Assembly (NCBI RefSeq): GCF_006345805.1
Contig: NW_021832273.1
Span: 1-64,000 of the forward strand
Source: Octopus sinensis
Lineage: Eukaryota
Direction: 5' to 3'
DNA length: 64,000 nt
Shown here: positions 14,423-56,589 of the stretch, one piece after another
Layout of the letters: each line of letters opens with the position of its first letter
Numbering within the stretch: the stretch's first letter is position 1
The notes under the pieces: generated by a model
What the model was told of the DNA's origin: nothing
Database searches by the model: none
The model's input: the letters and a program-made list of their open reading frames with translations, nothing else
Made by a program: the position numbers and the translations under genes

Positions 14423-14904
14423 TTATTAACTCACTATCTCCTACCATCAAAACTTTTATTTAATTACACAAAAAACACTATGCTTGATTGACATCATTTT
14501 CTTAATTCACCATTTCAAAATAAACTTAGCAGTCACGTGTCTTTAACAGATAGGCCCAAATTAAAATTTAGTTATTGTGTCCTGAATTAGTAAAAGTATC
14601 GGGATTAAAGAAGAATCAGCATGCACAAGACTGCACCAGCCATGAAATAAAAACTCATATCCACTATTATATATTACACCCTTATTCCAAAAAGGGAAGG
14701 GACATAGAAGCAATATACCTTTCCTGATTCCTTTACCGACCTCTGCGCCACTAACTGTATTTTTTTGAGCTGCAGAATTAATTTCTTGGTCTCCAATGGT
14801 ATTGTTTGTATTTTCTTCATTTTCGGGATTAATTTCTTGGCTTCCACTCGTATTGTCAATATTTTCTTTATCTTCGGAATTATACCATTTTCAAGTCAAT
14901 TTGA

Positions 14905-15235
14905 CCATTACAAACTTCAAATGTCATCTGGATAATTCAATTTGTCAATTATAAATTTCAAATTTCAATTTTTTTTTTTATAAAAGTTATACAACAAATA
15001 GTTGTATGTAATTAACAAATAGTTATTAATAACTAAATTCCCGGCATCGTAAATGGAAACACAGTTTCCACGTACTATGGCCAAGGAAATCCTTTCGAAA
15101 AGCCACTTGGACTCGCGTGGGTCTCCCCGTTTATGGGAGATCATGCGGCCAAGCTAAATTTCAAATGTCATCTGAAAAAATCAATTTGTCAATTATAAAT
15201 TTCAAATGTCATCTGAAAAAATCAATTTGTCGATT
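14905..15235 (+). repeat. ~37-bp subterminal tandem repeat (AATTTGTCAATTATAAATTTCAAATGTCATCTGAAAAAATC), left arm; continues at 18376-18470
   Basis: Units read directly from the sequence; interrupted by two CRE insertions. Confidence 0.9.
14964..15154 (-). mobile_element. 5'-truncated CRE-clade retrotransposon 3' end (191 bp)
   Basis: Minus strand encodes LGRMISHKRGDPRESKWLFERISLAIVRGNCVSI, matching the C-termini of the other CRE ORFs. Poly(A) tail; 12-bp TSD TAAATTTCAAAT at 14952-14963 and 15155-15166. Confidence 0.88.
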
Positions 15236-18200
15236 TTTTTTTCCAATGCAATTAAATTTTTAATCAATTATTTAAGAATGACCCTAGGATAGCGTGTGAA
15301 TTTCCGCGGACAATTTCACACGAAATCCTCTGGAAGAGCCACGACGTCTCCCGCGGATCACCTGTTTTTTTGGTGATTAGACCACCCAATCTTCGAATGA
15401 ACGAAAAACTCTCTGATCCAAAGACTCCGGAAGTCTCCACAGCGATCGGCTGGAAAAGATATCTGTCTGCCAGGAAAGAGTATTTCTTTTTCTTCAACTC
15501 TTCTGAACGTTTTGCAGCAGAGTCAGGAAAGGATGCCGAACTTCCGAATGAAGAAGGTCCAAACGTGTCAGGGCAGGTAAAATCCCAAACAAGTGCTTTC
15601 CCTCTCGTGTACGGGTAGATGGTTACGCCGTCTGGGCGTTTGCCATCCCCTCTATCGAGACCAGCTGGTTCGAGTTGAGAGTGGAATCCGGCAGCGTCCA
15701 TGGCCCTTTTGATGATGTCATTGGCGGCGGAATGTCGGGGAAAACGACCGGCGCTACGAGTGCAAGAAAGTGGGTGCCTTCCCAATGGACCAATCCTCTT
15801 TTCACATTTGCAGGGGTGTGGGGTGCACATCGGTAAGCCGAGACGTAGACATAGGCCGTCAAGTTTACAGCCGGTAGACGCAATAGGACAAGCGCTTATC
15901 CAGGAGCCAGAATTGGGTTGTGCACCCGATCTGAGACATATGATCCGTTCTTGGTCCATGCACAGTTCGATAACTCTGTAAGTCTCCCTGCACCAGATTT
16001 CGTCCCAATGTCTCTGTGAAGATTCCACTTCGGGGAATCTCAGACCATGGCTGCTCCAAGACTCGAGGCCGTTTTGCATCCACCGACACGGGGTACATTC
16101 ATTTAAAGACTTGAGAATGACGCCGATGAGGGGACCACAAAATGATCGTGAGGCCAAATAGGCTGGAAGAGCCAAGTCGGTAGGTGAACGGAGACCGATA
16201 CCTCCCATACGAATAGGTAGGGAAACTTGTTTCCATGCGAGATCATCAAGTTGCACGTTACAAATAAGTTCGGCATGACGACGAATGATAGAGTCTATTG
16301 ACCCCAGATGTTTAGGATGAAGGAAACATGGAGATGAACGGAGGATATACAGAATTTTTGGAATGGATAAAAAATTCTTCAAGAGGAACAAGCCTTCATG
16401 TGCATTTAGCTGGGATAACCGACTCGCTGCTTGTTCCATATTTGATGTCTTTTCCATCAAAATTTTTTCCGTTGCCTCACCGTGGAGAGGAAAGCCGAGA
16501 ATAATAAGGTCTTCCTTTTGGGTTATTCTGATTTCAGGAATGAGTGAGGTAAAGTTTCTGTGGATTTCATCGAAAGAGGCCACGTTAAGATTAGTCAGCT
16601 CACACTTTGACGGATTCAAGGATAACCCGATGTGGCCGAGCCGAGAGGAAATCATAAGGGCGTCTTTGAGAACCTGATCTGCCGGGCCACCGATTGTGAC
16701 ATCGTCCAAGTACCAAATGTTTAGGGGAGATTTGACTGACATTGCTATAGGGTTGATACCCAATGCGAAAAGGAGTGGTCCGAGAGGATCACCCTGTTGT
16801 ACCCCGGTGGACGAGAGGATACTTGAACCCTCGAAAAGGAGGCTGGAACTGTGCTCGTAACAAAGTTTAGCGAACGGCATGATTTCAGGTAACTGAGTCA
16901 TACACTCTCCAAGGAAACAGGAACGGTCGATCGAATTGAACGCATTTCGCATGTCAATTTTCAAGATGACACAATTGTCAGACACATTCTTGGAAGCAAT
17001 AAACTCTCTGACTGAATGGGCTGATGCTTCACAACCTCCTCTGACACCGACACCCAATTGGATGTTTTTAAAGATGATCGGGTAGGAATGGGACCTACGA
17101 CTGCATAATATTTTGGCTGCAAGGCGTCTAAAAGTGCACCCAACAGAAATCGGTCTAATTCCGCCGTCCTTTTTATTAAGGGCGGTGAGGCTTCCAGACA
17201 TGAAGAGAGAACGTGCGAAATCAGAGATATGGCCACTGATGAAAAGGGTTATCAGGTCGCATATTGAATCAATTAGGTTCACACCTGCATCAGACTAATT
17301 GAGTGATAAAAGGTCGCGAATGTGACCGGGACGAAGGCCGTCTAACCCCCCACTACTGGAGGGTCGGAATGATTTGAGATTATAAAGGAGCTCTTCTTTG
17401 CTCACTTTTTTAACTTCGGTAAAATGAGGACGAGAAAGGAATTCTAGATCATTTTTAACGTCGGGATGTTTTTCCCTTAACAGCTCGAGAGTCCTGTCCC
17501 CAATAGAGGCAAATGAGTCGTTACTGCAAAGAATTCTTAGAGCGGCAGTGAAGTCACCTTCCAATAGTTTGGAATGGATTCTTTTACTGAAATTGCATTC
17601 GGAGGTGTTATTCGATGTTTTGGGAAAAACATATTTCTGGGAAAGAAAAAAGGAAATAGTATGATTCCGATATAAGAGGATGGAGTTCTTAAGCCTCAAA
17701 GCCAGGGATTCGGAAGAGCCTTTGCTAGTGTATAGGTTCAGGGCGAATACGGGGAAACAGAAAAGTTTGGCCCAGTCCTCGTTTTGGTTGGTATTTATGG
17801 CTTTACGGATCAATGTGCATAGGGATTCAGCGGCTGTAGCACGTGAGCCTTTTGGCAGTCTGATGGGGATCTTCTTTAAGAGGCGGAAATTCGAAAGAAA
17901 TTGCAAAATGACAACAGATGTATAACTATTGAACGAGGAATCGTCAGCAGGAGTGCTGGGAATAGGCTTAGGAGGGTCGATTAGGCAAGTGTTAGATAAA
18001 ACAACACCCTCTAGAGTCTAGACAATTGAGACATCTCCATAGAGGAATACGGGAAGATGAGGCCTTAGATAGACCTACACACGATAGGTGGTAAAAATTG
18101 CCGCAGGAGGAGCATACCCTTCCACTCTTGCGCGAATTGGTACAGTTGCACGAGTAGCATAGAGAACTCATTAAACGTATAGGATGAAAGAATTTACAAT

Positions 18201-18369
18201 AATCAAAAATTAAACAGTGAAAAAAAAAGGACAGAAAAGAAAAAAGATTATATAAGGAAAGAGATTGATATGGAATGAGATCGATACCACAACAAGAATG
18301 TACGATAAGAAAAATTGATACCACCACAACAAGAATGTACGAAACTGGTTGCGGCTTAAAATAGATTGC
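15236..18369 (-). mobile_element. Near full-length CRE-clade non-LTR retrotransposon (PHD finger, RT, zinc finger, restriction-like endonuclease); ORF ~18171-15264 with one frameshift and one in-frame TAG
   Basis: RT motifs KIDMRNAFNS, GVQQGDPLGP and WYLDD; C-x-C...HPLSC; RPDG...WDFT endonuclease. PHD-type CxxC...CxxC...HxxC...WxCxxC near 18020-18160. Short poly(A); TSD TCGATT at 15230-35 and 18370-75. Confidence 0.9.
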
Positions 18370-18470
18370 TCGATTATAATTATAAATTTCAAATGTCATC
18401 TGGATAATTCAATTTGTCAATTATAAATTTCAAATGTCATCTGAAAAAATCAATTTGTCAATGTCATCTG

Positions 18471-19210
18471 AAATAATTGAAGCATATGAAAATTTTGGCG
18501 ATTGACAGTCTCTATGCTCCTCTCTTGGAGTTAATTTGAGAACAGCTTATCATTGGAATGAAAATAAAAATAAAGAAAGACATCTAAGAGGAGGTAAAAG
18601 ACATTCAAAAAAAAATCAAATAAATATAAATAAATTAATCAGTTGGATTGAATTTGATCCTCAGATCACTTTGAAAGAATGTGCGGAGAAAATACGAAAT
18701 AATTATTCAATGTCTGTGTCGGTTACAACAGTAAAAAATTGGCTTGATGGGGAATTAATTTCTCTCAAAACCTGTCGACCAATAATTGCAAATGTAAATT
18801 CACCTGAAAATAAAGAAAAAAGAATATATTATTTGGATTGCTTGTTTAAAGCAAGGTCTGCTGGAAGAACTTTAATTTGGATCGATGAATCCAATTTTAA
18901 TTTATATTGCAAGAGAAAAGAAGGACGATCAAAAATAAGATCTCGTTCTTTTGTCATTACTCCAAATTCGAGAAGCTCTAACTTATATTGTATAAGTGCA
19001 ATGTCTGCTTCAACATTGTTTAATTTTCAATGCAAAAGAGGTTCTTACAGAGGAGAAGATTGTAAAAAATGGATGAAAGAGTTAATTAATGAATGCAGAT
19101 CTTCATGCGTACAGGTCTTCAGGCGTACAATGGATGAAAGGGATTTGTTAACCGGGTTGAAAGGTATTATCCCCGAGTTACTCGTGGTGAGGACCTTTTT
19201 GATTTTTAAT
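18471..19210 (+). pseudogene. IS630/Tc1-like DDE transposase remnant, internally deleted
   Basis: RTLIWIDESNFN first-Asp motif. Near-identical to 54952-55640. 19131-19206 reads WMKGIC/NRVERYYPRVTRGEDLFDF* (one frameshift), resembling a transposase C-terminus. Confidence 0.8.
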
Positions 19211-19240
19211 TTACCAAATAAAATTTGTTCTGTTTCCCAT

Positions 19241-20474
19241 TTTAAATTTTTCCCAATAATAAATTAATAGTTAATCAGAAACTAAGCAGATCTCACTCCA
19301 GCTCGCTGATATCCACTCTCCTTCTCTTGGAAGAAAAGTCTACTTCCAGCTGCATCTTACTCCCCACTACCACATCTGATTCAACCATTGCATCTTCTTA
19401 GCATTCATTGGGTCGTCTTCATTTTTGCATGCCATCTCCACATACCGGTTGGAAGCAGAAGCGTATTCTTCACCAGATACCTTCATTCCGTGCTTGTGTT
19501 CGATCATCATACTCTCGAGCGTTCTTTTCAGTACAACGGATTGGATGTATGTCCTCGTTCCTGCTTCAATAGATAGTTTCTTCATATAATTTTTGAAGCA
19601 TTTCGAGACAACTCCATCCTATGTCATAACCACCGGAATTATTTTTACTTGACAGCTATACAGAAGCGAAAGCTCACTTGCCATAGGTCATACTTGTGAC
19701 ACTTTTCAACCTCCACTTGCTTGAGGCGATCCTGTGAAGTAATACCCACTTCAATTAGATTTATTTCGTTTCTGACTTTGTCGTGGACAAAGATATCTGG
19801 CTTGTTATATTCTACTTTTGTTTCGGTGAGGATTGTAGAATCAACCCTGATTTCAACTTTTCCGTCGACAGTGTTGACTGAACAGAATGTCCCTTCAATC
19901 GTCTTGCTTTTTTGAGTCCATACATTCGGCACAAGTTAAGGTGAATACACTTCACAACTTCGTTGTGTCTCCGGAGATAATCACTGTTGAGCATTTTACC
20001 ACACTGAGTAGCCATGTGGTCAACAGTTTTCTTGCTTTTCTTACAATGATTGCATAATGGGTCAGCGGATGCAAAGAACAAGTTTCGATCTTGCAAAAGA
20101 CAATACAATGCTTCGCTTCGTGGCCCATTATTTCCATTAGATAGCCATTCTGAGGATGCAGGTAAATCAACATTAGATTCATCCACATATTTGAAAAGCA
20201 CAGAATGTAGTGCTTTAGAACTAATTTTCTTTTGTAAATATTGTATCTGACTGGACTTTAGAGACTCCATAGTAATACTCTTCTTATCAATAATTGCATA
20301 TTTGGAGGATAGAAATCCTGCGATCATAGCCAAATGCCATTTATTCATTTTAATTACACGCAGAATCCCCGCCCTCCGTAAGCATATAGTTGACATATTT
20401 TCCAGACTCGTAAGGAACTGAAAGAGCATTAGTTCACTTTTGAAAGTAACTGATGAAAGCCCTCTTCCAAGAGC
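19241..20474 (-). mobile_element. 5'-truncated R4/Dong-like retrotransposon, same family as 42190-45803
   Basis: Near-identical to 44580-45800 (CNHCKK...DHMATQC, KPDIFVHDK, LIEVG) with the same 3' end TTAACTATTAATTTATTATTG. Confidence 0.9.
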
Positions 20475-20654
20475 CTTCAGGCGTACAATGGATGAAAGGG
20501 ATTTGTTAACCGGGTTGAAAGGTATTATCCCCGAGTTACTCGTGGTGAGGACCTTTTTGATTTTTAATTTACCAAATAAAATTTGTTCTGTTTCCCATAA
20601 CATGATTACAATTAGTATATACAATATTTTGATAAAATGCAAACTTGAATTTCA

Positions 20655-21390
20655 AAATTGTAAATTTGAGTTTTGCAGATGACATTTGAAGTTTATAATC
20701 GACAAATTGAATTATCCAGATGACATTTGAAATTTATAATTGACAAAGGCCTGATGGCTCGACGTTGTTCGCTTTCGACGCTGGTAAACCACTAGTTTGG
20801 GATGCCACGTGTGTTGATTCCTTCTCCAAGTCGGCCATCAACGAATCCGCCTCTCTGCCCGGGTCCCGTGCTAATAGGGCTGAACATACAAAATCCGAAA
20901 AATACCGGGGCTTGTTAGACGGCTTTTGGTTTTGGCCAATTGTTGTTGAGACTTTGTGCGTCTTTGGCACAAAGACAGTTGATCATCTAAAGAAACTTGG
21001 CCACCTCTGTTCTTTACGCTCCAAGGATCCTAGGGAATTTACTTTCCTAATCCAAAGGATCCTGTTGGCCGTTGTGCGTGGGAACAGCTGTTCCATCCGG
21101 CTTGCTGGCCGATTAATTTCTGATTAATTTGGCTTTTCATATTTTTTTAATAAATACCTTTAATCAAAAAAAAAAAAAAAAAATTGAGTTTTTCAGATGA
21201 CATTTGAAATTTATAATTGACAACTTGATTTTTTCAGATGACATTTGAAATTTACAATTGACAAATTGATTTTTTCAGATGACATTTGAAATTTATAATC
21301 GACAAATTAATTTTTTCAGATGACATTTGAAATTTATAATTGACAAATTGAATTATCCAGATGACATTTGAAATTTGTAATTGTAAATTT
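20655..21390 (-). repeat. ~37-bp subterminal tandem repeat, right arm (inverted relative to left arm)
   Basis: GACAAATTGATTTTTTCAGATGACATTTGAAATTTATAATT units at 20655-20747 and 21184-21390. Confidence 0.9.
20748..21183 (+). mobile_element. 5'-truncated CRE-clade element
   Basis: Begins at (K)RPDG and reads PLVWDATCVD...LLAVVRGNS; poly(A) 21166-21183. Interrupts the repeat at GACAAA|TTGA. Confidence 0.88.
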
Positions 21391-21446
21391 GGGGTTCATA
21401 AGTGCCAAATTGACTTGAAAATGGTATAGTTTCTTGGTTTCCAATT

Positions 21447-21765
21447 GTATTGTCAGGATATGCTTCACAGAACTACGAAAAAATTGAAAAATTAAAATAT
21501 TCAGAGCTCAAAGACAGGTTCATAGTGCAACCGATTATTGTGGAGTCATCTGGAGTCTTCGGTCCGGAATCAATCTCTTTCATTAGGAAACTTGGATCCC
21601 TGATCTCGGTTCAGACGAAAGATAGAAGGGAGACCGAATGGCTGTTTCAACGCCTTTCAACAACCGTTGTCAGGGGTAATAGCCACGCTATCCTTTCTGC
21701 TCTTAAGCAACCTTAATTAACTTATATTTTCTTTTGTTAAATAAATATTAATCTTAAAAAAATTA
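21447..21765 (+). mobile_element. CRE-clade 3' fragment
   Basis: KLKYSELKDRFIVQPIIVESSGVFG...VVRGNSHAIL, followed by an A-rich tail. Confidence 0.8.
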
Positions 21766-22469: not shown

Positions 22470-22489
22470 CATTTGATAATACTGTCGAA

Positions 22490-23520: not shown

Positions 23521-23540
23521 TACCGATCATTATTTAACTT

Positions 23541-24920
23541 GATCGTCGAATTTGATGTTTATGATGCGTTCGGTTGTTTTCCGGAAAAGGACATTAATAG
23601 AATGAAGTTGATCATTTTCTGAGAAGCAGGGTGACCCTCGTAGCACATGATTTAATTTTTGGATGCCAAGGGCATTTTTGAGCAGGAAGAAGGCTCTATT
23701 TGGGTCCAACAAATTAAGACGAACAAAAGTCTTTTCCAGTAGCATTTCCTTGGTTTCAAGAGCGTCCTTGATTCCACCATCTGTCAATGGGCAGCCTAAT
23801 ATCTCCAGACTGATACTAGGCGTGATGGACGCTCCGGGAATTATCTCACTGAAAGAGGAAACAATAACCTCGAATTCATCACGACGGAACCCAAAATTAA
23901 TGATTTTACTTTTTGAAGTGTTCAGTATAAGACCAACGCATTCAAGTCTCGGAATTAGGTCAACGAGTGTCTTGAAGACAGTTTCGGGATGACCTCCGAG
24001 GGTGCAGTCATCAAGGTACCAAACATTCAGCGTGGTTGAGCAGCTCTTTGCAATGTGATTAATCCCAAGGCAAAAGAGAACAATGGGTCTCCTTGTTGAA
24101 CTCCCGAGGACGAGGAAATATGGTAAGGGCCATGGACGAGGGTGAATGGTTTCGCGTATGAGCTGAGTACATAGTTGTATATTTCGGGACAAAATTCAAG
24201 ACAGTTCTCCAATATAGAGTCGCGGCGAATGGTGTTAAATTCATTACAGCTGTCCAATTTAACAATAATATGGGGGGTATTGTTGTTTATGTGGTTGAAT
24301 ATACGTATCGGTCTCAAAGTTTGTGAACCACACAAATGCCTCTGTGGTGCATCGATTGATCAATTTGGACTTCACCCTCTTTCCTGTCGAAAAAGCGCTG
24401 GTAGATTCCCGAGGCATTCAGCTCTCAACGACGTCATAAGAAGAGCTCTCGATTCAATCGGATTCCCATCAGTGCTGGAACCACCTGGATTGGACCGAGG
24501 AGATGGAAAACGCCCAGACGGGATGACTATCTTTCCGTTTTTGGAAGTAAAGCCTCTCGTATGGGATTCAACATGTTCCGACTCCTTGTCCAAGACAAAC
24601 ATGTTGGAAAGTGCCTGCAATGCCGGCACAGCTGCGGATAAAGCAGAGGACATCAAGAAGAAGAAATATGATGGGCTCACCGATCGTTACGTTTTCCCGG
24701 CAGGTTGCTGTCGAAACCCTGGGATCGATTGGGAAGGAGTCGTTGTCCTTCCTCAAGTGTATTGAACGTCTCAAGACCTTAAGAACACACAATCCTCTTG
24801 AGACGAGATGGCTTCTCCAGAACGTGTTCCAAGCAATAGTGAGGGGAAACAGGATCGCCATCAGTTCTTCTTCTTTACATACAACTGTTTTACTTTAATT
24901 GATAATTAAATTAAAAAAAA
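23541..24920. mobile_element. CRE-clade element with inverted 5' segment (RT on minus 23541-~24290; endonuclease on plus ~24290-24898)
   Basis: GVQQGDP and WYLDD on the minus strand; HKCLCG...HPLSC...RPDG on the plus strand. A-tail 24913-20; candidate TSD TT(A/C)TTTAACTT at 23530-40 and 24921-31. Confidence 0.8.
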
Positions 24921-24931
24921 TTCTTTAACTT

Positions 24932-28002: not shown

Positions 28003-29888
28003 CAGTAAAACCTCTCGAATCCGCCGATTTTGGGACCGACCAAAAAATCGGCGGATTCGAGAGGCAATTTAAATAATATTTTATAGTTGAAACATGAACT
28101 CACAATATAGATTAAGTATTTCTTTTCATATACAAATGACTGAATACATAAAATTATTTATATTCAAAAAAATCAGAAATTTTATTTTTTTTAATTGATT
28201 TTCTTAGCATTTCCCAATTCGCATAATATTTTCATGATCATCTATATCTGCATTTACCTAAGAAGCATAAGTTTTAATAATCTCTAGAGCTCTGAGGCTT
28301 CTGAGAGATCAATTTTTTCTCATTTGATTCCTCTTCAATCATTGTTTCCTAAGTATAATTATTAAATAAAATCACTAACACAACGACGCATCACAAAAAT
28401 ACATTTAACGTGTGTAATGCGAATTTTAAAATGTTAATTAATTTAACTACAATTGTCAGATTGTCATGCCTCGCTCACACATCCTTCTTCCTGATGAGAA
28501 ACAACATCGGATACCCAAGCTTTATTACCTACTGCGAAGTTCACCTGCCACGAACATTACGACAGCTACTTTCGATTAGACAAATCTCTCAACAAAACTG
28601 TTGAGTCACTAATCAACGTCGCTTCGACGAACTCGGTTGGAAGCAATGTAAGCTTCGCCTCTGGATTTGGGGGTGTCGGTCTGAAGATCGGACGCTTGGA
28701 GGTCGTAACCGGCATACTTCTCGTCTCTCTCAAGCTTGCAACATTTGACACGGCAAGTCCTTCGTCACACTATTGGACTTCGCTGGTGGAATGAGTCATT
28801 TGATGAAGCTTGCCGGGATGGATCGGGTCGGACTCAAATCCCGAAGACAACAACGAAACAAAGGAAACTGGGATAACATTGTCTGCTCCAAAATAAAGTT
28901 CAGAGGCACTTAAAAAAGAAGCAAATCAACATCGCCTTGCTTGCCTGGTGTCAGCCCTCAAGGGTGGGGAGCGGAGCAGGCTTGGTTGCAATCCCTGCCC
29001 AAATCTCGGGACTTTTTGGACGACGATTCTTGAGGCTTGGAATCGGACAAAGACTTGGACCTAGACGTTTGCCAGGAGCACGATGCCGCTGCGGAAAACG
29101 GTCGATGCGAAGGGATTTGCACCCGCTATCCTGCAGGGATCGCCGGAAAAAAGGACCACGTTCACGCCGCCTAGAACGATTGATCGTCCAGAGCTCTTTG
29201 AAGGCTGCAGGCTTCCCAGCACAGCTTGAACCAGTGGGTCTCGATCGAGGTGATGGAAAGAGACCTGACGGGATGACTCTTTTCCCTTTCAACTCCGGAC
29301 GATCTTGGTCTGGGACGCAACTTGCGTCATTACTTACTCAAGCACGAATCTCCTTAAATCGGTTCAGACACCTGGAGCAGCTGCCTCAATCGCGGATAAA
29401 CCTTAAAACCAAAAAATATTCCTCATCGGGGACCGCTACAGATTCACCTGCCCTGTTGCGGCTGAGTCATCAGGAGCTGTTTGGCCCAGCGACTGCCGAT
29501 CTTGCGCGGACTCGGTAAGAATGCTCGCCACAAAGAAAAATTGATCCTCGTGAAGGAGTATGGCTAAGACAAAGGATCCGGAATAGCCATATCAGAGAGA
29601 ACTCGCTTTCCATACAGGCAGCGGGCTTCCTCAATTGACTTCTCACATCAATCTCTTCTCTGAATTATTAACATGACCATTATTAATAATGAAAAATTTC
29701 ATAAAAAAAAAAAAAAAAAAAATTTAACTTACAATTAGATAAAAAAATTATTTTTCATAATACTGAGGAACGGATTCGAGAAACAAGCGGATTCAAGAAT
29801 CATTCATAGGAATTTCAAATTTTTGATTAAAACAAGCGGATTCGAGAAGCGGCGGATTCGAGAAGCAGCGGATTCGAGAGGTTCACTG
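28003..29888 (-). mobile_element. Internally deleted pogo/Tigger-like element (family of 39455-41263)
   Basis: TIR CAGT(A/G)AAACCTCTCGAATCCG with TA TSD; both ends match 39455-41263. Confidence 0.9.
28455..29720 (+). mobile_element. 5'-truncated, frameshifted CRE-clade element
   Basis: RCRCG...HPLSC and EPVGLDRGDGKRPDG; poly(A) 29703-29722. TSD AATTTAAC(T)TACAATT at 28440-54 and 29721-36. Confidence 0.85.
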
Positions 29889-38135: not shown

Positions 38136-38139
38136 ATAC

Positions 38140-42189: not shown

Positions 42190-45100
42190 TATTATTATTT
42201 GCAACAATTAATAATAGTTGTGTGGGTGTTGTGCATGTCCGTTCCTAATGAATGAGGAAATCGAATCCTAGGGGCCTTCCTGCGAAAAAGGATAAATATA
42301 ACATAACAAGTGCAGGAGTGTCGTCTCTGGGGCTGGATAACAGCACAAAGAAGGACTAGTATTCATGACAATCCAATTGCTGGGAATCCTACTATCCCAA
42401 CTAACTTGCATTCCCTTTCGGCCATTATCGATGATGCTATTTGTGTTTCTGAAGCTGAGTGGGTGCCTCAGATTGTTTATGCCACGAAGCAAAGAATTGG
42501 GAGGATACCAAGAGGTGGATGGAACCTTATCCGTGAGAAGTTTATTCAAAATTCTCGAAGAGTGCAAGTCTCAGTCAACTCAAAGGAATGGTTAAACCAA
42601 TGAGAGTGGATAATAATTATGGAAGCAATTGCCATCAGAAGCAATTTCTTGAGAGCTCAGAAATTTCCACTTTTAGAAAGTGTCTAGAAGAGTTGAATAT
42701 ACAAATTAAGAATATTGAATCGATTCCAAGGGATTCACGTAAACCAACTCCAAAAATTCAAAATAAATATTTGAAAACTGATATATTGACAGGATTGAAT
42801 TTGGCGATATATTATATTACGAAAGATAATCATCCTAATGATATCAATAGCATTTCTGATATTCTATATGCTGCTCAATGTGCGTATTTATCTCTAACCA
42901 TGAGAGACAAAGCACAGAGCACATGGGTAGAAAATATTGAAAAGAAATTTCAAAATTATCTGCAGAATTGGAAATTGTTAATTCCCATTCCAATCAAACA
43001 CTACCTCCATCTGAAAAGCAAAAGGTAATGGATGTTCTCTGTCGCTATGGGTATAAGAAAACTAAGAAAGGTGAGCTGTCGAGGATTCAGATATTATTGC
43101 AAGACCTGATTAGGATTAACAATAAGAAAATAGAAGTTCATAATTCAAGGAAGCAATTTCGTAAGGATAATCAGTGCTTTGAATTAAATCGAAAAAGATT
43201 CTATCGAGATTTAACAAAGAAAGAGGAAGTGACGCTGTATGGATTTGATGATGAAGAATGTGTCTCTTTTTGGCAAAAGTCTGGAGCGAGAGAAATGGGA
43301 GGCCTCAATCTTATGACGTTGTTGGAAAACGAACTACTTGTGCTGAACATATGCTTCCAGAGTTTACGGAAGAGTTTTTGGAAATGTTATTAAGTATCTT
43401 CCTGACTGGAAGGCATGTGGATGTGATGGGATATATAACTTTTTCATTAAGAAGATGGAGTCATTACATGGATTTCTGTGTCACGAGATAACCCGAATAA
43501 TTAATGGAGAGTACATGCCTGAAAGTTGGTTTTACACTGGAATAACATATTTGATTCCTAAAAAAGATGATTGTGAGACCCCGAAGGACTTACGTCCTAT
43601 AACGTGTATGCCGACATTGTATAAACTTGTCACCAAATGTGTTAATGTTAAACTGGCTGATTTTGTCGAGGCATTTGGCCTAATTTCAGACAACCAACTT
43701 GGAACGAGGAAGTATTGTCAAGGCGCCAAGGAGCAAGCTCTCATTAACCAATGTTTGAACAAGGAGTACGGGAATGGCCTTTATTCTGCTTGGGTCGATG
43801 TGAAGAAAGCATATGACTCAGTTGATCATGATTTTTTGTTTCACGTTTTGGATTGTTCTGGAATCCCGCTTTGGATCGTAAACTTTGTGAAGAGCGTAGT
43901 TAAGAAGTGGGCAGTAAAGCTGCATATGGAAGGTAGAAGAATTGGATCAGTGAAGTTAAACCGAGGAATTTTACAGGGAGACTCATTGTCTCCTTTACTA
44001 TTTGTTATGGTATTAGATCCTCTAAGCAGGATCCTTAATTCCGTGTTTCCAAAACTTGAAATTAACCAGGAAGATCCCAATATGTTAACATATTCTACTA
44101 ATCATTTGCTATTTATTGACGATCTAAAAATATTTGCTCTCAAACAAGACACTTTACTCAAAATGATGGAAGCTGTTAACGGATTTTTTAAAATTGTTGG
44201 TTTGGAGATGAATTCAGAAAAATCAGCGTCTAATTTGGAATCATTATCATGTTGTAAGACTATTGACGGAATCAATGGATATCGGTATTTGGGTGTACTT
44301 GAAGATGGTGGAAGCAATGTTCTTAAGAATAGAGTTATGGACTCTATCTTTGAGAATGTTAGAAGAAGGATAACTATGCTATCGAAAACAAACTCAACTC
44401 TGTGAATCTGTTTCGTGCTATAAATGAATATGCATTGTCACTATATAATTATTATATTGGGCTAATCAATATTGAACCTTCTGAATTTGATGATATTGAC
44501 AGACAAATACGGCAATTGCTTACGTCGCTCAGATTACATCTCAAACCTGCAAATAAAGAGAGACTGTATTTAAACCGGAAGGCTCTTGGAAGAGGGCTTT
44601 CATCAGTTGCTTTCAAAAGTGAACTAATGCTCTTTCAGTTCCTTACGAGTCTGGAAAATATGTCAACTATATGCTTACGGAGGGCGGGGATTCTGCGTGT
44701 AATTAAAATGAATAAATGGCATTTGGCTATGATCGCAGGATTTCTATCCTCCAAATATGCAATTATTGATAAGAAGAGTATTACTATGGAGTCTCTAAAG
44801 TCCAGTCAGATACAATATTTACAAAAGAAAATTAGTTCTAAAGCACTACATTCTGTGCTTTTCAAATGTGTGGATGAACCTAATGTTGATTTACCTGCAT
44901 CCTCAGAATGGCTATCTAATGGAAATAATGGGCCACGAAGCGAAGCATTGTATTGTCTTCTGCAAGATCGAAACTTGTTCTTTGCATCCGCTGACTCATT
45001 ATGCAATCATTGTAAGAAAAGCAAGAAAACTGTTGACCACATGGCTACTCAGTGTGGTAAAATGCTCAACAGTGATTATCTCCGGAGACACAACGAAGTT

Positions 45101-45803
45101 GTGAAGTGTATCCACCTTAACTTGTGCCGAATGTATGGACTCAAAAAAGCAAGACGATTGAAGGGACATTCTGTTCAGTCAACACTGTCGACGGGAAAAG
45201 TTGAAATCAGGGTTGATTGTACAATTCTCACCGAAACAAAAGTAGAATATAACAAGCCAGATATCTTTGTCCACGACAAAGTCAGAAACGAAATAAATCT
45301 AATTGAAGTGGGTATTACTTCACAGGATCGCCTCAAGCAAGTGGAGGTTGAAAAGTGTCACAAGTATGACCTATTGGCAAGTGAGCTTTCGCTTCTGTAT
45401 AGCTGTCAAGTAAAATAATTCCTGTGGTTATGACATGGATGGAGTTGTCTCGAAATGCTTCAAAAATTATATGAAGAAACTATCTATTGAAGCAGGAACG
45501 AGGACATACATCCAATCCGTTGTACTGAAAAGAACGCTCGAGAGTATGATGATCGAACACAAGCACGGAATGAAGGTATCTGGTGAAGAATACGCTTCTG
45601 CTTCCAACCGGTATGTGGAGATGGCATGCAAAAATGAAGACGACCCAATGAATGCTAAAGAAGATGCAATGGTTGAATCAGATGTGGTAGTGGGGAGTAA
45701 GAGGCAGCTGGAAGTAGACTCTCTTCCAAGAGAAGGAGAGTGGATATCAGCGAGCTGGAGTGAGATCTGCTTAGTTTCTGATTAACTATTAATTTATTAT
45801 TGG
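42190..45803 (+). mobile_element. Full-length R4/Dong-like retrotransposon (RT, CCHC, restriction-like endonuclease), several frameshifts
   Basis: LRPITC, WVDVKKAYDSV, GILQGDSLSP, LFIDD, CNHC...H...C and KPDI...LIEV. Preceded by (TTA)n; ends TTATTATTG. Confidence 0.92.
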
Positions 45804-48725: not shown

Positions 48726-48733
48726 TATATACT

Positions 48734-50100
48734 ATGGATTGTTCACATTTGGTTTTCCAAAACAAAAGAAGTTATATAAGAAATAACAATGAATATGATC
48801 AAATCAAGTCGATTCTCCAAGGGATCGATGTAAAGACAAGAAATAGATATCAGGAAAGAAGGCTTTTGACCAAGTCAAAATCTTTTATACTATTAAATGA
48901 CTGCCTTTATTATCGTGTTGAAAACGGGAGTCACAAATTAGTTATTACTTCTGATGATCATGAAAAAATGAGAAGACTTTGTCAAGGAATTCACGAAGTT
49001 AGCCATTCCTGTCAAAATGAACTTGAGAGATTGTGTAGGCAAAGATTTTTTTTTATTAAACGTGAAATCGTCCGTGATGTTGTTATCAACTGTGACATTT
49101 GCCGCTTTTCTGGACCTTTAAAGGACCATGATACAGAATTTCACGTTTTTGCTAATAAACCAAATGAAAGGTTTCAAATGGATTTAATCGATCTTAAAAG
49201 GTGCTTTTTCTGATTATTTTAGATTTTCTAGTTCCAATGATTCTTTTTCATGGCTGTTAACTTGTATTGATGTATACAGCAAATATGGATTCACAAGAAA
49301 GCTAAAAAATAAATCTGGACTCGAGGTTTCAAAAAATATTCAAGATATATTTATCGAGCATGGACCATGTCTATATCTACAAACAGATAATGGGACAGAG
49401 TTCAAGAATTCTTACCTTACTGACTTGTGTGGAAAATACAACATTCTCCAAATTTACGGAAGGCCTAACAATTCACGCAGTCAAGGGATCATTGAGCGAT
49501 TCAACCAAACGATTACACGCAAAATCTCGAAAATGTTATCTGAGGATAGTACCAAAAAGTGGATTAACTGTATTGGAGATGCAGTTATCTGGTATAACCT
49601 CTCTACTCATTCTTCTACGGGTTTTAAACTATTCTGTAAAAATAGGTGAAACTCCCTTTATGAGATTCAGGGGAATTCCAGGATTTAATGCAATAGTTCC
49701 AGAATATCCTTTTAGTGAATCAAGAGGTATTTATTTTTGGTCATAATTTAGAAATTTAGTTGAAATTTAGTTAGTTAATAACTATTTGTCAATTACATAT
49801 AACTTCCTCAAAAAAAAAAAAAAAATTTAGAAATTGATTTAGAAAATGCCGAACATGAACGATTCCAACAATTCGAAGAAGAGTTTAGCAAAATTTGTGC
49901 AACCCAAGGTATTAAATAATCGTCAAATTTTTTGATGAAACAAGTTTAAAAACGTCTAATAACATTGAATCGTCGAAATTTAAAATAAATTTCAGACCAA
50001 TCGATATCAACTCACCTTATTATCGTAGAATAAATAAAAAAATGTCTGTTCATCGAAATAAAAATGATTTTAAATTGGGAGATAGGGTTTTCTATAAAAA
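48734..50100 (+). CDS. Spliced Ginger integrase-type transposase (exons 48734-49200, 49223-49620, 49646-49726, 49831-~49888, then a further decayed junction)
   Basis: HHCC (IHEVSH...CDIC); FQMDLIDLK|RFSSSNDSFSWLLTCIDVYSK; LQTDNGTEF; QGIIERFNQT; HSST|GETPF. The D-D-E triad is intact after splicing. The 3' end is approximate. Confidence 0.82.
49757..49823 (+). mobile_element. 67-bp retroposed CRE 3' UTR plus poly(A)
   Basis: Similar to the tail of 14964-15154; 12-bp TSD AATTTAGAAATT at 49745-56 and 49824-35. Confidence 0.8.
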
Positions 50101-51572
50101 TTTATAAATATAGGTCCGAATAAAAAGGATTTTGGAACGAATCCTTCACTAAAATTAAATAAATTTGAAAGTCCATATGGTTCTCCGGTTAAAATTGTTC
50201 AGATTTTTCAAATAACTATGCTGAGATTGAGAAAAAAGATGGCTCAAAAGATAAAATTCAAATTCATCGCCTTAAAAAAAAAAATTAATTAATTTTTTGA
50301 ATTTTATTAAAAATTTGTTTCAATTTGAGAGTTAAACACCGATATCGCAGTGTGAAACTTTTTGTAAAAAAGGTAAGAACTTAATAAAAATTCAAGTTCC
50401 AGTAGCATAACGAATCATCTTTTTTGTATCTGAGTTCTTTGTAAAATTTATTAAATGACATAAAAACAGATAATAGATAATAAAATTAAAAATAATTACA
50501 ATATTAAATTTATAAGCTAATTTTAACCTCATATTATATTTTATTATTTCAGTATAAAAGTTTTGGCAGAATTTTTTCATCCGGTGCTGAACTTTTGTAT
50601 AATTATATACACCCATATGTTTATCAATCATTATTTATTAGCGAATCAATAATGTGCGCTCAGGGCGTAGTGCGCGTTGTGCATGTGACAAAATATTATG
50701 TTAAAAATCACCCAAGGACTCGACTTAAACTCATTTAAAGAATCGAATATATGGTTGGACCCTTTTGAAAAAGGTATGAACTATAATTCAAAACTATTCA
50801 TGGAGAGGCAAAAAGTCGTCTGAATAGTCATTGTTGCCTTTTTTGACCAGTATTATTATCTCGAACTTATGGACCTAAGAACGTGTTTAATTGTGACAAA
50901 ATGGCACTATATTTCAAACTTCTTTCATCGAAATCATTTGTTAGGTCTATAGTTATACAATTCGTGAAATCAAGAAAGTAAAAGTAAAAAATGGCTGTTT
51001 TATTTTGTTGCAATTCCGTGAATGAAAAAATGTTTCCTTTATTAATTGGGAAATATAAATTTCCAAGGTTTTTGAAAAATTTCAATCTGGAAGATAATGA
51101 AGTTATTAATGTATCTTCAAAATATTCATGGATAGCGTCATTATATTCAATGCATGGTGGATTTTAGATAGGCTAAATTTCGGTTTTTTCATAATAGGCA
51201 TTATGCATCTTTTGAAATCTTCAGCATAATGCTTTTTCAGTCATTAAAAAGTCCATATTTACCGGCTATAAAGGATGAGAAGATGAGATAACTGATGAGA
51301 AGCTCGCAACAGATTTTTTCCTGCACTAGTATTTTTATTTGATTTACTTTGTGGTTAACTTGTAAATTGGATATGAATAATACTACAAAAAAATGATGAG
51401 AAAGAAAATGAAATCTACATAGAATACAACTTTAAAACAATTTTATTATTGTATAGATATCTATTTTGTAATAACTGAATTTAAACATAAGCTGCAACAT
51501 GCTTTAAAGAAAACTATACCATTTTCAAGTCAATTTGACAATTACAAACTTCAAATGTCATCTGCAAAAATC

Positions 51573-51652
51573 CACTTCGATCGGGGCAAAGATATGGCGG
51601 TGAGATAATGCACTGTATTTCTTGATTTTTAGCGTTTCGGCCAGGTTGGCTG
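51573..51652 (-). mobile_element. 80-bp internal CRE endonuclease-region fragment
   Basis: Minus strand reads ANLAETLKIKKYSALSHRHIFAPIEV, matching the AxxAExxKxxKYSxL...PIAVE segment of CRE ORFs. Confidence 0.7.
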
Positions 51653-51684
51653 ATTTGTCAATTACAAACTTCAAGTGTCATCTG

Positions 51685-54600
51685 GAAGAACGTGATAACC
51701 AACGTGCGTTGTTGTTGTTGTTTTTAAACGCTTCTCGATCTGTGTGAAATATATGACAAACTCTGAAGAAAATCGAACTATGAAAAAACCTGAACAGTTC
51801 ACTCGCTCCCCGACAGTATGTCAGTCGTGCCTCGTGTCAAACCCCCGCAAACGGGGAATCCACTGCGCCCTCTGCAATGCCCATTTCCACCTGAGCTGTG
51901 TATCTTTGTCTAAGGCGACTGCAAGTGCCTTGGGCGCATGGCACTGTGCCCGCTGCCTCTTCAACTCAAAGGGCGCTGGGCCAAATCGGCGACCCTCTCG
52001 TACTACTACCCGCCACAATCTCTCGACTGAAGAATTTATTCTGTCCCTGTCTTCGCTTCGTGGCACAAGAGACATCCCTCTCCGCATTCCCAAACAAGCC
52101 CGCCTGACGGTCGCTTCCTGCCTCGAACAAATTATCTCAGAAGCACTCAGTTCCGAAGAAGACCTCCCGTGGTTCCGTATCTTCCTGTTTGCACCTCTCG
52201 TCCTTGGAAACAAGCACGAGCCGACCATTCCCGGCAAGGGAATCTCGTCCGCAATTAAGTCTCGGGCAGTTTCTTTCGGCGAGGAATGCGACAATCTTGT
52301 CCTACCCTTCCCTCTTCCCTCCTCTCAGAGGAAGTCCGGGTTATGCGAAAATGGCATCGGACAGGACGCCAGGATGATCGATCGGGTGAATCGAAAGCTC
52401 CTCGAAGGAGACGTGAGAGCTGCCCTCCGTGTCTTGTGCTCCGGGGACTCTGTTGCCGAGTGTACGTCCAGAACATCAACTTTGCTGAGGTCAAAGCATC
52501 CGCCGGCCCCTGAAGACCTAAGGCCTTGGACTCCCCCCCGAAGCCCCACACTGATGATCATCACTGAGGAAGAAGTTCTGTCGGGAATCAGATCTTTCGG
52601 AGCGAGCAGCAGCGGGGGAATTGACGGCCTTCGGCCGGGGCATATCAAGGATATGACTTCTGCGATCACCGGGGAATCCGGCTCTCGGCTCTTGTGTACA
52701 ATCACGAAACTGGTCGGAAGGATCATCGACGGAAAGATCCCCCTCTTCGCGAGGAATCTCTTTTTCGCTGCCCACCTTCACGCTTTTCAAAAACCGGACG
52801 GAGGTGTCCGCCCAATAGCGGTTGGCAATTACTTCAGAAGGCTCTGCGGAAAAGTTTCTGCCAGAAGGGTTGCAACGAGAATTGGGGCCGAGCTTTCGCC
52901 TACGCAAGTCGGTGTTGGTGTGCGTGGCGGCTGCGAAGGAGCCGTTCACGCTACCAGGGGGTTCTTCTACATGGGGCAACGAGTTACTACCGATTTTATT
53001 GCTGTGAAGCTTGATATCACCAACGCTTTCAACAGCGTGCGCCGGGATGCTATTTTGGAAACATGCGCTCGAAGAGTACCAGAAATAATCAATCTTGTCT
53101 CGCTTGCCTACGGCTCGGAGAGCAGTCTTGTATACGGGAATGAGATCATCCGTTCGGAGACCGGCGTGCAACAGGGTGATCCGCTAGGGCCACTCCTCTT
53201 CGCGTTGACAATCGATGAGGCAGCTCGCCTTGCTGTCTCTCAATTCAATCTGTGGTATCTTGATGATGCCACATTGGGTGGCCATGCTGACCACGTTATT
53301 CGGGATGTCGAACACATCGTACCAGCACTGGCTACCCTCGGCCTCTCGGTCAACGCGAAGAAGACCGAGATCATTAATGTCTCGTGTTCGGAGGCCGACT
53401 TCCGATCCGCTGTGGCCCGCCTCAGAGCAACCCTGCCTTGTGCGAACGTTACCCCAATCGATGATGTCACCTTTCTCGGTGGATCCCTGTCCTACACGAA
53501 GCTCCAATCCATGCTTTCCGCCAAAGCTGAACACTTCCAAAGACTTTCTACAAATCTCTCTATCTTGTCCTCGCACACTGCCTTTTTCCTCTTGAAGAAC
53601 AGCATTCACATGCCGAAACTCATTTTCACCCTCAGGAGCAATCCCTGCTTCCTGCATATGGACCTACTCGCCGCATACGACGTAATCCTGAAAAAGACTG
53701 CCGAATCCGTCCTCAATGTACACCTCGATGGTCCTGGATGGGCCCAATGCTCGCTCCCATTGAGATTCGGAGGCGCGGGAATCCGCACTGCATCCGATGT
53801 GGCACTTCCGGCATATCTATCCTCCCTTTCGATGTGCAACAACCTGGCCTCTGAGATCCTACTCAACTCTTTCGGATCTTGCCTGGATGGTGCTTTTTCG
53901 GATGGGCTCATTACCTGGGATCGCTCCTTTTCTGAGAGGCCCGAAGATTTCTCCTCCCAACGTGCCTGGGACTCTATTGCATGCCGAGCGCGTGTGTCTG
54001 AGCTCTCGGCAACCCTTGATCAACACCGCCTGGCATGCCTTCGTGCGGCATCCGCCCCTCACTCTGGCAGCTGGCTGAATGCTCTTCCTCTCTCCAGCAT
54101 CGGGACGTGGCTAGACGATGCTGCCATACGCATCGGAGTGGCTCACCGTCTCGGCCTGGATGTTTGTGCAAAACACCGCTGCAGATGCGGTGAGGACGTT
54201 GACGAAAAGGGACTGCACCCACTTTCCTGCAAGAGGAGCGCAGGCAGGGAACACAGACACAAGGCCCTCAATGAAATCGTAAAGGCCGGTCTCGAAATGG
54301 CGGGCCATTCGTGCCTCCTCGAACCGGTCGGACTCGATCGGGGAGATGGCAAAAGGCCTGACGGGATGACAATATTCCCGTACTCGTCGGGGAAGGCCCT
54401 TGTATGGGATGTCACCGTTGTGGATACCTTTTCGAAATCGAGGATCCATTCTTCTGCGGCAAACCCTTGTTCGGCTGCAAACCACGCCGAAAAGATAAAA
54501 ATACATAAATAATCTTCGCTCGCGGACCGCTACCGCGTTACGGCAATCGCTCTGGAGACCGCTGGAGTTGCAGGAAAGGAGACTGACTCGTTCCTCAAAG

Positions 54601-54757
54601 AGGTCGGGCAGTCCATCGGGAGAAGGCTCAAGGACTCGAGAGAGAGCCTCTGGTTCCGCCAGCGCATCGGCCTGGCCATTGTTCGGGGCAACGCACACTG
54701 CGTCCTCGCCGCTGGAACTTAACTATTTTCGGTGTTAATTGTTAAAAAAAAAAAAAA
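51685..54757 (+). mobile_element. Full-length CRE-clade retrotransposon; ORF 51753-54722 with a single in-frame TAA at 54510-12
   Basis: PHD finger 51819-51957; KLDITNAFNS, GVQQGDPLGP, WYLDD; HRCRCG...HPLSC; RPDG...WDVT. The frame continues past the TAA to IVRGNAHCVL. Poly(A); TSD AAGTGTCATCTG at 51673-84 and 54758-69. Confidence 0.94.
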
Positions 54758-56589
54758 AAGTGTCATCTGCAAAAATCAATTTGTCAATTACATACTTCAA
54801 GTGTCATCTGCAAAAATCAATTTGTCAATTACATACTTCAAATGTCATCTGCAAAAATCAATTTGTTAATAACAACCTTTAAATTTGCAATTAACAAAGT
54901 CAATTTTGCATATAAGAAATTTTTCGTCAAAATACATCGAACATTTTTTGATGGCTGAAAAAACAAGATATCGCAAGTACAATGATGATACAAAAAAATA
55001 ATAATTGAAGCACATGAAAATTTTGGCGATTGGCAGTCTCTATGCTCCTCTCTTAGAGTTAATTTGAGAACAGCTCATCATTGGATTGAAAATAAAGGAA
55101 AGAAAGACATCCAAGAGGAGGTAAAAGACATTCAAAAAAATCAAATAAATATAAATGAATTAATCAGTTGGATTGAAGCTGATCCTCAAGTCACTTTGAA
55201 AGAATGTGCGGAGAAAATACGAAATAATTATTCAATGTCTGTGTCGGTCACAACAGTAAAAAATTGGTTTGATGTGGAATTAATTTTTCTAAAAACCTGT
55301 CGACCAATAGTTGCAAATGTAAATTCACCTGAAAATAAAGAAAAAAGAATATATTATTTGGATTGCTTGTTTAAAGCAAGGTCTGCTGGAAGAACTTTAA
55401 TTTGGATCGATGAATCCAATTTTAATTTATATTGTAAGAGAAAAGAAGGAAGATCAAAAATAGGATTTCGTTCTTTTGTCATTACTCCAAATTCGAGAGG
55501 CTCTAACTTACATTGTATAAGTGCAATGTCTGCTTCAACATTGTTTAATTTTCAATGCAAAAGAAGTTCTTACAGAGGAGAAGATTGTAAAAATGGATGA
55601 AAGAGTTAATTAATGAATGCAGGTCTTCAGGCGTACAAGATCCCACTTTTATAATTGACTAGCACAATCGACGAGAAGATTGACTTTTTTGTCGCGGATG
55701 TGCTATTAATAATAACCAGTCAATTATAAAGTGATTGTCTTCAACAAGTGCATCTGAGAGAACATTCGAGAGGTATTGGGCATTTCTTGGAACAATGGTT
55801 TTCAGATCCAATACAATCATCTACAATACAACATTAAAACCTCCTTGTCTACTTTTTAATTAGTATCACTATTCTTTAAAAATAGATGACGATCATATAA
55901 ATAATCTCATTGCGTTTTTGCTGCAGGTTAAGTAGAATATGTTATTCATTTTGATAAAATAGGTATGTCGTGATGCATTGAAAAATACTATCAAAGGAGC
56001 AGAAAAAATGAAAAAACAAGGGAGATGAAAAAATAATGAAAACCATATATAGAGCAATGATTCTGTTTCTAAAAAAAGATTTTAATACAAATTTAGCACA
56101 TCGACGATGCCGCTATACGACATAAAGTTATTGAAAAAATGGGGATAACAAAAAAGTTGAAGATAAGGAGGGAAATTTATTTAAAAAATTTCATTTTAAA
56201 AAAATAGTAAAACATTCTGATGTCATTTTATACGAGTACGGTTAGAATGAAATACGAAAAATTCTATTAGGGAGTTTTATAGTGCAAAATTAAAGGGCTG
56301 GTTTTCAAACGGGGGTTCACAACCGTAAAATTTTGAAAATCTATACGATTTCAGTTTCAACATAAAAAATTTTTTTAATTATAATTAAAATAAATCATCT
56401 CTCAAATTTACAACCTTTATGATTTGCCACTCTTTTTTTTACCTGAAAACAATTAAAATTCTGTTTTTCCCTTGTGTTTTTTTACCATTTTTCTAAGTTC
56501 ATCAAAATACAGGTTATTTCGATCAGAAAAAATAAGTGCTGATAATTAACATTTGCTCTAAATCTCTGAATTTAAAAGAAAAAATGCAA

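Follow-up and report, generated by a model that had tools for sequence, protein, structure and literature searches.

We examined a 64,000-nt stretch of Octopus sinensis DNA (positions 1 to 64,000 of contig NW_021832273.1, assembly GCF_006345805.1), referred to below as the window, in which long interspersed nuclear elements (LINEs) with a predicted restriction-like endonuclease (RLE) lie inside the subterminal repeat arms of a Tc1/IS630-type DNA transposon. Window coordinates are 1-based, and the other loci, whose names begin with L, have coordinates of their own. Five RLE-LINE pieces (ins1 to ins5) interrupt the three arms found for two copies of the host transposon, and further insertions (E6 to E9) lie outside the arms (Table 1). 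The preference for the arms is real, and strict specificity is absent.

As in Tc1/mariner-IS630 elements generally, a TA target duplication flanks host copy 1 on both sides and host copy 2 on its left side. Perfect 21-bp terminal inverted repeats (TIRs; TACCATTTTCAAGTCAATTTG) are present at 14883-14903 (+), 21406-21426 (-) and 51517-51537 (+) and nowhere else in the window, with none expected by chance; the TIR sequence for searching for this host family is TACCATTTTCAAGTC. Copy 1 sits at a TA within a 51-bp tandem repeat that resumes beyond its other end, and a right end of copy 2 was not recognised in the window. The 640-bp transposase remnants of the two copies (18472-19113 and 55000-55637) are 95% identical. 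The truncated open reading frame (ORF) at 18536-19267 matched DDE_3 (PF13358) with 26.6 bits, below the cut-off of 28.6, and all transposase relatives at 46-62% identity have PF13358.

The sequence-only reading had described the arm repeat as a unit of ~37 bp. Tandem Repeats Finder (TRF) instead gave a unit of 41 bp, AAATTTCAAATGTCATCTGAAAAAATCAATTTGTCAATTAT, which divides into two half-units of ~20 bp, one with the core TCAAATGTCAT and the other with TCAATTTGTCAAT; its core segments are TTGTCAAT and TGTCAT. In sequence, the half-unit cores are similar to the inner portion of the TIR (TCAAGTCAAT compared with TCAATTTGTCAAT). Units were counted for each arm after removing the insertions, using the TRF period of 41, a unit scan and the rejoined arm. 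The three window arms sum to 858-898 bp, close to the ~1 kb given earlier, and the unit scan found no arm units elsewhere in the window. A Tc1-like relative from another animal (L003, 53% identity) has 21/42-bp tandem arrays in both arms, which indicates that arm arrays are a trait of the lineage. This relative is followed by a second arm pair without a transposase, which looks like a derivative of the miniature inverted-repeat transposable element (MITE) kind. Elements of the inverted repeat-direct repeat (IR-DR) type carry several transposase-binding direct repeats per arm, and by analogy the half-units are probably transposase-binding sites. The octopus transposon is like IR-DR Tc1/mariner elements in its TA duplication, its perfect terminal inverted repeat and its subterminal direct repeats with an inverted-repeat core, but its arms carry many more repeats (4.5-7 units of 41 bp).

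Table 1. Positions of the host transposon, the RLE-LINE insertions and other elements; the last row refers to locus L003
Feature	Position	Strand	Description
Host copy 1	14883-21426	+	Tc1/IS630-type, internally deleted; TA duplications at 14881-2 and 21427-8
Copy 1 left arm	14883-18470 (segments 14883-14963, 15155-15235, 18370-18470)		~5 units; interrupted by ins1 and ins2
Copy 1 right arm	20600-21426 (segments 20600-20747, 21184-21426)		~7 units; interrupted by ins3
Copy 1 transposase remnant	18472-19113	+	Helix-turn-helix region, ending at the first aspartate of the DDE triad
Host copy 2	51517-~55640	+	Left TIR after TA, left arm, transposase remnant
Copy 2 left arm	51517-51572, 51653-51684, 54760-54900		~4.5 units; interrupted by ins4 and ins5
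ins1	14964-15154	-	191-bp RLE-LINE 3' fragment; T11 tail plus TTGAA; profile 910-946, E=3e-9
ins2	15236-18369	-	Full-length 3.13-kb RLE-LINE, frameshifted; profile 4-947; RVT_1; target site duplication (TSD) TCGAT(T)
ins3	20748-21183	+	436-bp RLE-LINE 3' fragment; A18 tail; profile 826-946, E=8e-43
ins4	51573-51652	-	80-bp internal ORF scrap; profile 867-893, E=4.5e-5; translation SANLAETLKIKKYSALSHRHIFAPIEV
ins5	51685-54759	+	Full-length 3.07-kb single-ORF RLE-LINE; A16 tail; 10-bp TSD GTGTCATCTG; one in-frame stop
E6	21456-21762	+	RLE-LINE 3' fragment outside the host; profile 864-948, E=4e-25
E7	23540-24919	+	Single twin-primed RLE-LINE; TSD ~ATTMTTTAACT
E8	28455-29720	+	5'-truncated RLE-LINE; A20 tail; 15-16-bp TSD AATTTAACT(T)ACAATT
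E9	49757-49825	+	69-bp tail fragment, ins1 family; TSD ATTTAGAAATT
Unrelated LINE fragment	19241-20474	-	5'-truncated; in the interior of host copy 1, not in an arm
Pogo-like DNA transposon	28003-29883 and 39465-41290		DDE_1 ORF 40152-41000; TIR CAGTRAAACCTCTCGAATCCGC; subterminal GCGGATTCGAGAA repeats
L003 arrays	5487-5680, 7298-7470, 7597-7878, 8573-8712		Tandem arrays of the Tc1-like relative

We searched every stop-to-stop piece of the window with a protein profile made from 60 homologues and the window copy ins5, in which X replaced the stop. The search recovered all five arm pieces where the sequence-only reading had placed them, in the arms of two host copies, with the end of ins5 at 54759. 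Their mutual divergence was also upheld: the pieces share 37-61% amino-acid identity in the C-terminal region and almost no nucleotide similarity, so they represent independent events of different families. Four of the five have clean junctions, with TSDs of 12, 5-6 and 10 bp and poly(A) tails. The exception is ins4, which lacks both tail and TSD and at which the unit has lost 1 bp. By blastn, ins4 has 98.8% identity to part of an O. sinensis element in VCDQ01008158.1 (L006). It may be what remains of an insertion that was later deleted, or filler introduced when a break was repaired. The exact 12-bp TSD of ins1, TAAATTTCAAAT, lies at 14952-14963 and 15155-15166. The tail of ins1 is A11 followed by TTGAA before the TSD (14964-14968), and these extra bases, which resemble arm sequence (TTGAAATTT), might have been picked up by read-through at the donor. 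A blastn comparison matched ins2 to an O. sinensis copy in contig VCDQ01006093.1 (L011) with 97.5% identity across 3.1 kb, and the ins2 ORF has 96% amino-acid identity to O. sinensis LOC115230450 (P0129). The ins3 junction, GACAAA^TTGAG, corresponds to TCAA^TTTGTCAAT in the unit. With a single in-frame stop, ins5 is young or was recently active.

Two reversed histories were ruled out, namely that the arrays grew around pre-existing insertions, as the sequence-only reading had allowed for older CRE elements, and that the host transposon landed in LINEs. The units recur without copies of the insertion sequences, and the TSDs consist of unit sequence.

The ORF of ins5 encodes an N-terminal PHD finger, a reverse transcriptase domain (RVT_1), a CCHC motif (CxC..H..C) and a predicted PD..D endonuclease (the RPD..WD.T region). 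The reverse transcriptase domain (PF00078) was detected with E=1.5e-16 in ins5 and E=2.1e-16 in ins2, and with the family profile the best PDB matches were R2 proteins (E=4e-20). Among 26 homologues the invariant or nearly invariant columns are C813, C815, H825, C829, R835, R838-H839, E860, R871-P872-D873, W888-D889-T891 and E916..K919, which include the CxC..H..C, RH, EP, RPD and WD.T motifs. The endonuclease stretch aligns motif for motif with the RLE of R2, although on its own the match is non-significant (i-E 7.5e2), and no Pfam model matched this region. Footprints of target-primed reverse transcription are present as tails of A8-A20, 5'-truncated copies, TSDs of 4-16 bp and three inversions of the twin-priming type. 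Homologues are widespread in animals (contigs from Tara Oceans, octopus, barnacle and Lepidoptera), and the named ones are all called 'uncharacterized protein'. The protein collection held no near-identical entry, with best matches of 48% for the LINE ORF and 62% for the transposase.

We therefore refer to these elements as candidate RLE-LINEs; the earlier label 'CRE-clade', as opposed to HERO, R4/Dong, NeSL or R2, was not confirmed. CRE, R2-Hero and R4-Dong types have all been reported in cephalopods (PMC10294476; PMC13282606). No spliced-leader RNA gene context was seen at the insertions, which lie in transposon arms and assorted AT-rich DNA.

The PHD finger at the N-terminus of ins5 (51744-51960) matches the H3K4me3-reading PHD fingers of BPTF, PHF2, TAF3, ALFIN-like proteins and PHF8 (E~1e-6), a likeness that hints at chromatin-guided integration. 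In relatives, other N-terminal modules replace the PHD finger or are added to it: ubiquitin C-terminal hydrolase (PF00443/PF13423), SAP (PF02037) and a nuclear-receptor-type zinc finger (PF00105). Proteins with such alternative N-termini are P0009, P0014, P0018, P0044, P0058, P0091, P0149 and P0155; P0151 and P0206; and P0148. The N-terminus of these LINEs looks like a swappable module. Twin-priming 5' inversions were classically described for L1. They recur in the RLE-LINEs, at 23540-24919 in the window, at 431-3048 in L006 and at 4715-7962 in L011.

Enrichment in the arms was evaluated with nine junction-defined events and 53.6 kb of non-LINE sequence, of which the arms make up 1.7%. Five of the nine events lie in arms (P=1.6e-7 under a uniform null), and all three window arms carry at least one insertion. 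Compared with equally AT-rich positions, the background against which enrichment had been predicted, the excess persisted within the window (P ~4e-6). It also persisted when occurrences of ATTT, AATTT or ATTT-N4-ATT served as the null (P from 1e-5 to 3e-3). The arms hold 32% of the ATTTR-N3-ATT sites, and measured against those sites five events in nine is unremarkable (P=0.13). The sequence-only reading had proposed a preference rather than strict specificity, and this agrees both with the strength of the window statistics and with the varied positions and orientations in the arms and the insertions elsewhere at TTTAAC- or TTTAGAAA-type sites.

For comparison we used six O. sinensis loci (78.5 kb) around annotated LINE proteins, chosen regardless of arms. 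Five of these six loci contained no arm-like repeats, which again indicates preference and not specificity. The sixth, L006, contains a related transposon. Its TIR-like end at 403-430 scored 36 in a gapped alignment (1-nt indel) against a shuffle maximum of 29, arrays with a 41-bp period lie at 3065-3174 and 6192-6269, and 50 bp of the locus match the inner right arm of host copy 1 at 94% identity. A twin-primed LINE copy at 431-3048, of which all but the poly(A) is inverted, begins 17 nt from the terminus, ends in A20 and is bordered by the 10-bp TSD TTTGTCTATT. Another copy, at 3180-6137 with the TSD TGTA, lies on the inner margin of the same arm and contains a nested full-length element. 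L006 is an independent replication of arm insertion: across the six loci, two of ~16 events fall in ~0.6% of the sequence (P ~0.004 by our estimate).

At L009 a copy is inserted outside arms at TCTA^ATTTAAACATT, and at L005 a full-length copy (1993-5590) follows the tail of another at a distance of 15 bp. RLE-LINEs also cluster with one another, at L005, with 4-5 pieces per 10 kb in L006 and with four in 13.6 kb in L012. No arm-like repeats were found at the LINE junctions of Tara Oceans and other relatives (L001, L002, L005 and L007), and no such LINEs were found at the Tc1-like loci L003 and L004. An 11-mer in the L011 flank, AAAATCAATTT, was considered as an arm match and dropped, as the 3' end of that copy is deleted and the match is non-significant.

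The insertions outside the window arms include E6, which the sequence-only reading had overlooked. Its 5' junction directly follows the TTGTCA of the 51-bp repeat (21450-21455), 28 bp past the right TA of host copy 1. That reading had also listed three tailed insertions elsewhere, at 23541, 28455 and 49757. All three positions are indeed outside the arms, but 23541 marks the inverted 5' half of E7, of which the inverted 5' part corresponds to profile 362-618 and the sense 3' part to 756-948, with a tail at 24913-24920. E8 lies within a MITE of the pogo-like transposon, ~160 bp from its CAGTGAACC terminus, and the empty paralogous site is at 39594-39609. Two internal LINE scraps were found at 38137-38364 and 62265-62459; other reverse transcriptase matches were weak and belong to other LINE clades.

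The 3' untranslated region (UTR) shared by ins1 and E9 contains ATTTGT(C/T)AATTACATA(C), a 16-17-nt copy of the copy 2 arm unit. In E9 this copy, ATTTGTCAATTACATA, is an exact 16-nt match, and the E9 UTR scored 32 against the arms, compared with a maximum of 25 among 187 control blocks of 900 bp. This is no more than suggestive; it could reflect 3' transduction, in which a master copy would once have resided in an arm in the orientation of ins5. When all families were compared, E9 alone stood out; the scores of ins1, ins3 and E8 for similarity between 3' UTR and arms were marginal and were taken as AT-rich noise.

In seven of seven arm events, counting those of L006, the junction lies no more than ~6 bp from a half-unit core. 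The junctions are TCAAAT^GTCA, TCAA^GTGTCA, TCAA^TTTGTCA, TC(A)^ATTTGTCA, TTTG^TCGAT, GTCA^TTTGTCTATT and TTCAAAT^TGTA, and the half-unit core at the window arm junctions is TCAAWT(T)GTCA. The five window arm events use at least four positions of the unit and both orientations, with TSDs of 0-12 bp; this variation separates them from site specificity of the R2 or Tx1L style. Because the related motif TTGTCWA was derived from the arms, junctions outside arms are the fairer test. TTGTCWA adjoins two of the six non-arm junctions, L009 (TTGTCTA^ATTTAAACATT) and E6 (TTGTCA^GGATATG). The background within ±3 bp of the motif is 0.5-0.7%, so that two of six gives roughly P~7e-4. The window has 34 TTGTCWA sites, 12 of them in arms.

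Since the arms are dense in motifs and a motif-matched null absorbs the enrichment, the most economical explanation is that the LINE machinery has a weak preference for a sequence motif, of which the arms are dense arrays. We give this explanation about an even chance of being correct. The insertions with their TSDs, the enrichment and its recurrence at a second locus are shown by the data; recognition of the motif by the LINE protein as their cause, like transposase binding to the half-sites, is inferred. Under this model, poly(A)-tailed single-ORF LINEs would integrate by target-primed reverse transcription with a loose choice of target, in either orientation, with TSDs of 4-16 bp and with the usual nick at AT-rich sites of the ^ATTT type. 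The choice would be biased towards TTGTC(A/T)A and its partner TCAA(A/T)TGTCAT. Each ~20-bp half-site of the IR-DR-style 41-bp unit would bear the preferred motif. At least five divergent LINE families would then find a hot spot in ~0.9 kb of arm, which has about one third of the motifs of the window. Any benefit of the arms as a safe harbour would be a by-product, a rationale and not a demonstrated adaptation.

Several observations weigh against this explanation. The motif was defined after the sites had been seen, and the test for clustering at the core is weak (~0.02-0.05 by our estimate). The junctions of E7, E8, E9 and the L005 copy lack TTGTCWA and are TTTAAC- or TTTAGAAA-type sites instead. 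The families may differ in their preferences, with one or two events each. Insertion driven by the motif and insertion driven by the arm are inseparable at these numbers: three to five motif events lie in arms and one outside, for 12 and 22 sites respectively (P~0.13). The statistics cover one window and six O. sinensis loci.

A less probable explanation, which we would still take seriously, is that the LINE proteins recognise the direct-repeat array itself, or an array that is bound by transposase or marked in some other way, having co-evolved with the host transposon; the arms would then be a mobile, multi-copy safe harbour, as the sequence-only reading had suggested, and the LINEs would sometimes be carried along. 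Every arm seen, three in the window and one in L006, has been hit, most of them twice, and the habit is common to at least five families at 37-61% identity. The arm-unit copy ATTTGTCAATTACATA(C) in the ins1/E9 UTR, with its score above the control maximum, fits 3' transduction from an arm, but the motif score of the ins1 UTR is unexceptional (reached by 5 of 187 control blocks). The 21/42-bp arrays kept in Tc1-like relatives of other animals would provide a stable class of target, and Tx1L, discussed below, is a precedent. Against this explanation, the nick position and orientation vary, the LINEs at five of the six O. sinensis loci have no arms beside them and the arm motif also occurs at non-arm junctions. 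The sequence-only reading had further suggested that the LINEs hitch-hike when the host moves. No insertion is common to the two host copies or to L006, so no composite has demonstrably moved. In its fullest form, this explanation would have diverged RLE-LINE families keeping or re-evolving recognition of the direct-repeat core, with the arms as a self-renewing safe harbour, an arm unit incorporated into one 3' UTR and composites occasionally mobilised. We consider that version doubtful. If it were true, it would amount to a relationship with three partners, the LINE, the DNA transposon and the host, undescribed for RLE LINEs.

It is more doubtful still that the hot spot reflects structure or chromatin, with the PHD finger, or a structural preference of the endonuclease, directing nicking, whatever the exact sequence, to periodic AT-rich arrays that are bent, nucleosome-poor or specially marked. 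The PHD finger is conserved in the family and resembles those of H3K4me3 readers, E8 lies in the subterminal region of another DNA transposon and LINEs cluster together in L005, L006 and L012. In addition, EhLINE1, an RLE LINE that is not site-specific, reportedly picks hot spots by DNA structure and a short nick motif (PMC1635306). However, the family profile and a repeat scan found no transposon insertions in the adjoining 13.8-kb AT-rich array of a 75-bp satellite, whereas the neighbouring DNA is saturated with them. The fine-scale clustering at the half-unit core favours a sequence cue, and chromatin state is unreadable from sequence. Finally, chance or ascertainment in a pericentromeric transposon graveyard, where nested insertions would occasionally form clusters across many windows, would fit with the dense LINE, pogo and Tc1 debris beside the satellite, with a pattern singled out post hoc and with its presence at only one of six O. 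sinensis loci, but is very improbable given the P values obtained in the window, 1e-7 to 1e-5 with nulls matched for length, AT content or simple motifs, and the replication at L006, a locus picked through its LINE protein and not its arms.

The target of Tx1L in the DNA transposon Tx1D lies in internal tandem repeats. Insertions of Tx1L concentrate in repeats of Tx1D in Xenopus laevis, which is the closest precedent (PMC6719617). The octopus case is similar in that a LINE uses the repeats of a DNA transposon as a landing site. However, Tx1L has an APE-type endonuclease (Tx1 clade) and uses one sequence in one orientation, whereas the octopus LINEs would have a restriction-like enzyme, represent at least five families, insert at variable positions and orientations and have most of their copies elsewhere. 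In contrast to the fixed Tx1L site, octopus TSDs are 0-12 bp in the window arms, 4 and 10 bp in L006 and 11-16 bp elsewhere.

Among RLE LINEs in general there is a tendency to target multicopy repeats (PMC4640811). R2 inserts in 28S ribosomal DNA, CRE1/2-SLACS-CZAR in spliced-leader genes, NeSL/Utopia in SL1 and U2 small nuclear RNA genes, R4/Dong in (TAA)n and some HERO elements in microsatellites, each at a fixed position, whereas the octopus arms are a hot spot only. The octopus LINEs share with these target-specific elements a reverse transcriptase followed by CCHC and, by alignment, a putative PD-(D/E)xK endonuclease, as well as multicopy targets. They differ in that the target is the direct-repeat array of a mobile element and not a host gene or microsatellite, and from R2 in having an N-terminal PHD finger instead of its zinc finger/Myb region. 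EhLINE1 of Entamoeba histolytica, also with an RLE, has a short, weak nick consensus and hot spots determined by local sequence and structure (PMC1635306). The octopus LINEs likewise lack a unique site and show a weak short motif, but EhLINE1 belongs to another organism and LINE lineage and has no reported link to the repeats of another transposon. Our literature searches turned up no account of RLE LINEs being concentrated in the direct-repeat arms of Tc1-like elements.

RLE LINEs are the source group of programmable insertion tools such as R2, and it matters how target choice is encoded and how it drifts. A lineage with graded specificity, in which many families softly prefer a 7-10-bp core found in arrays, would be a natural series for mapping target choice. 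With Tx1L and Tx1D it would make two cases, of differing mechanism, in which a retrotransposon has a DNA transposon as its niche, and LINE activity in the octopus genome already attracts interest. If the enrichment reflects motif density only, it is an ordinary target-site preference.

The 75-bp satellite fills positions 1-13803 of the window and has higher-order periods of 149, 224 and 374 bp. The array is inverted at ~2236-2240, where the GC skew changes from +0.42 to -0.43. Beyond the satellite, the window is a dense patchwork of transposon debris. Besides the elements described above, it includes several LINE reverse transcriptases and a pogo-like DDE_1 transposon together with a deletion derivative. 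The derivative (28003-29883) is a MITE with a deletion of ~610 bp that hosts E8, and the autonomous copy keeps the empty site.

The unrelated LINE fragment in the interior of host copy 1 (1.23 kb) is 98.5% identical to 44575-45803 by self-blastn, and its family is also present at 57760-58891. It is bordered by a perfect 124-bp direct duplication of host sequence (19117-19240 and 20475-20598), an unusually long TSD. The LINE copies are much richer in GC than their surroundings, with a GC fraction of 0.54 at 52001-54000 and 0.45 at 16001-18000 compared with 0.30-0.37 around them.

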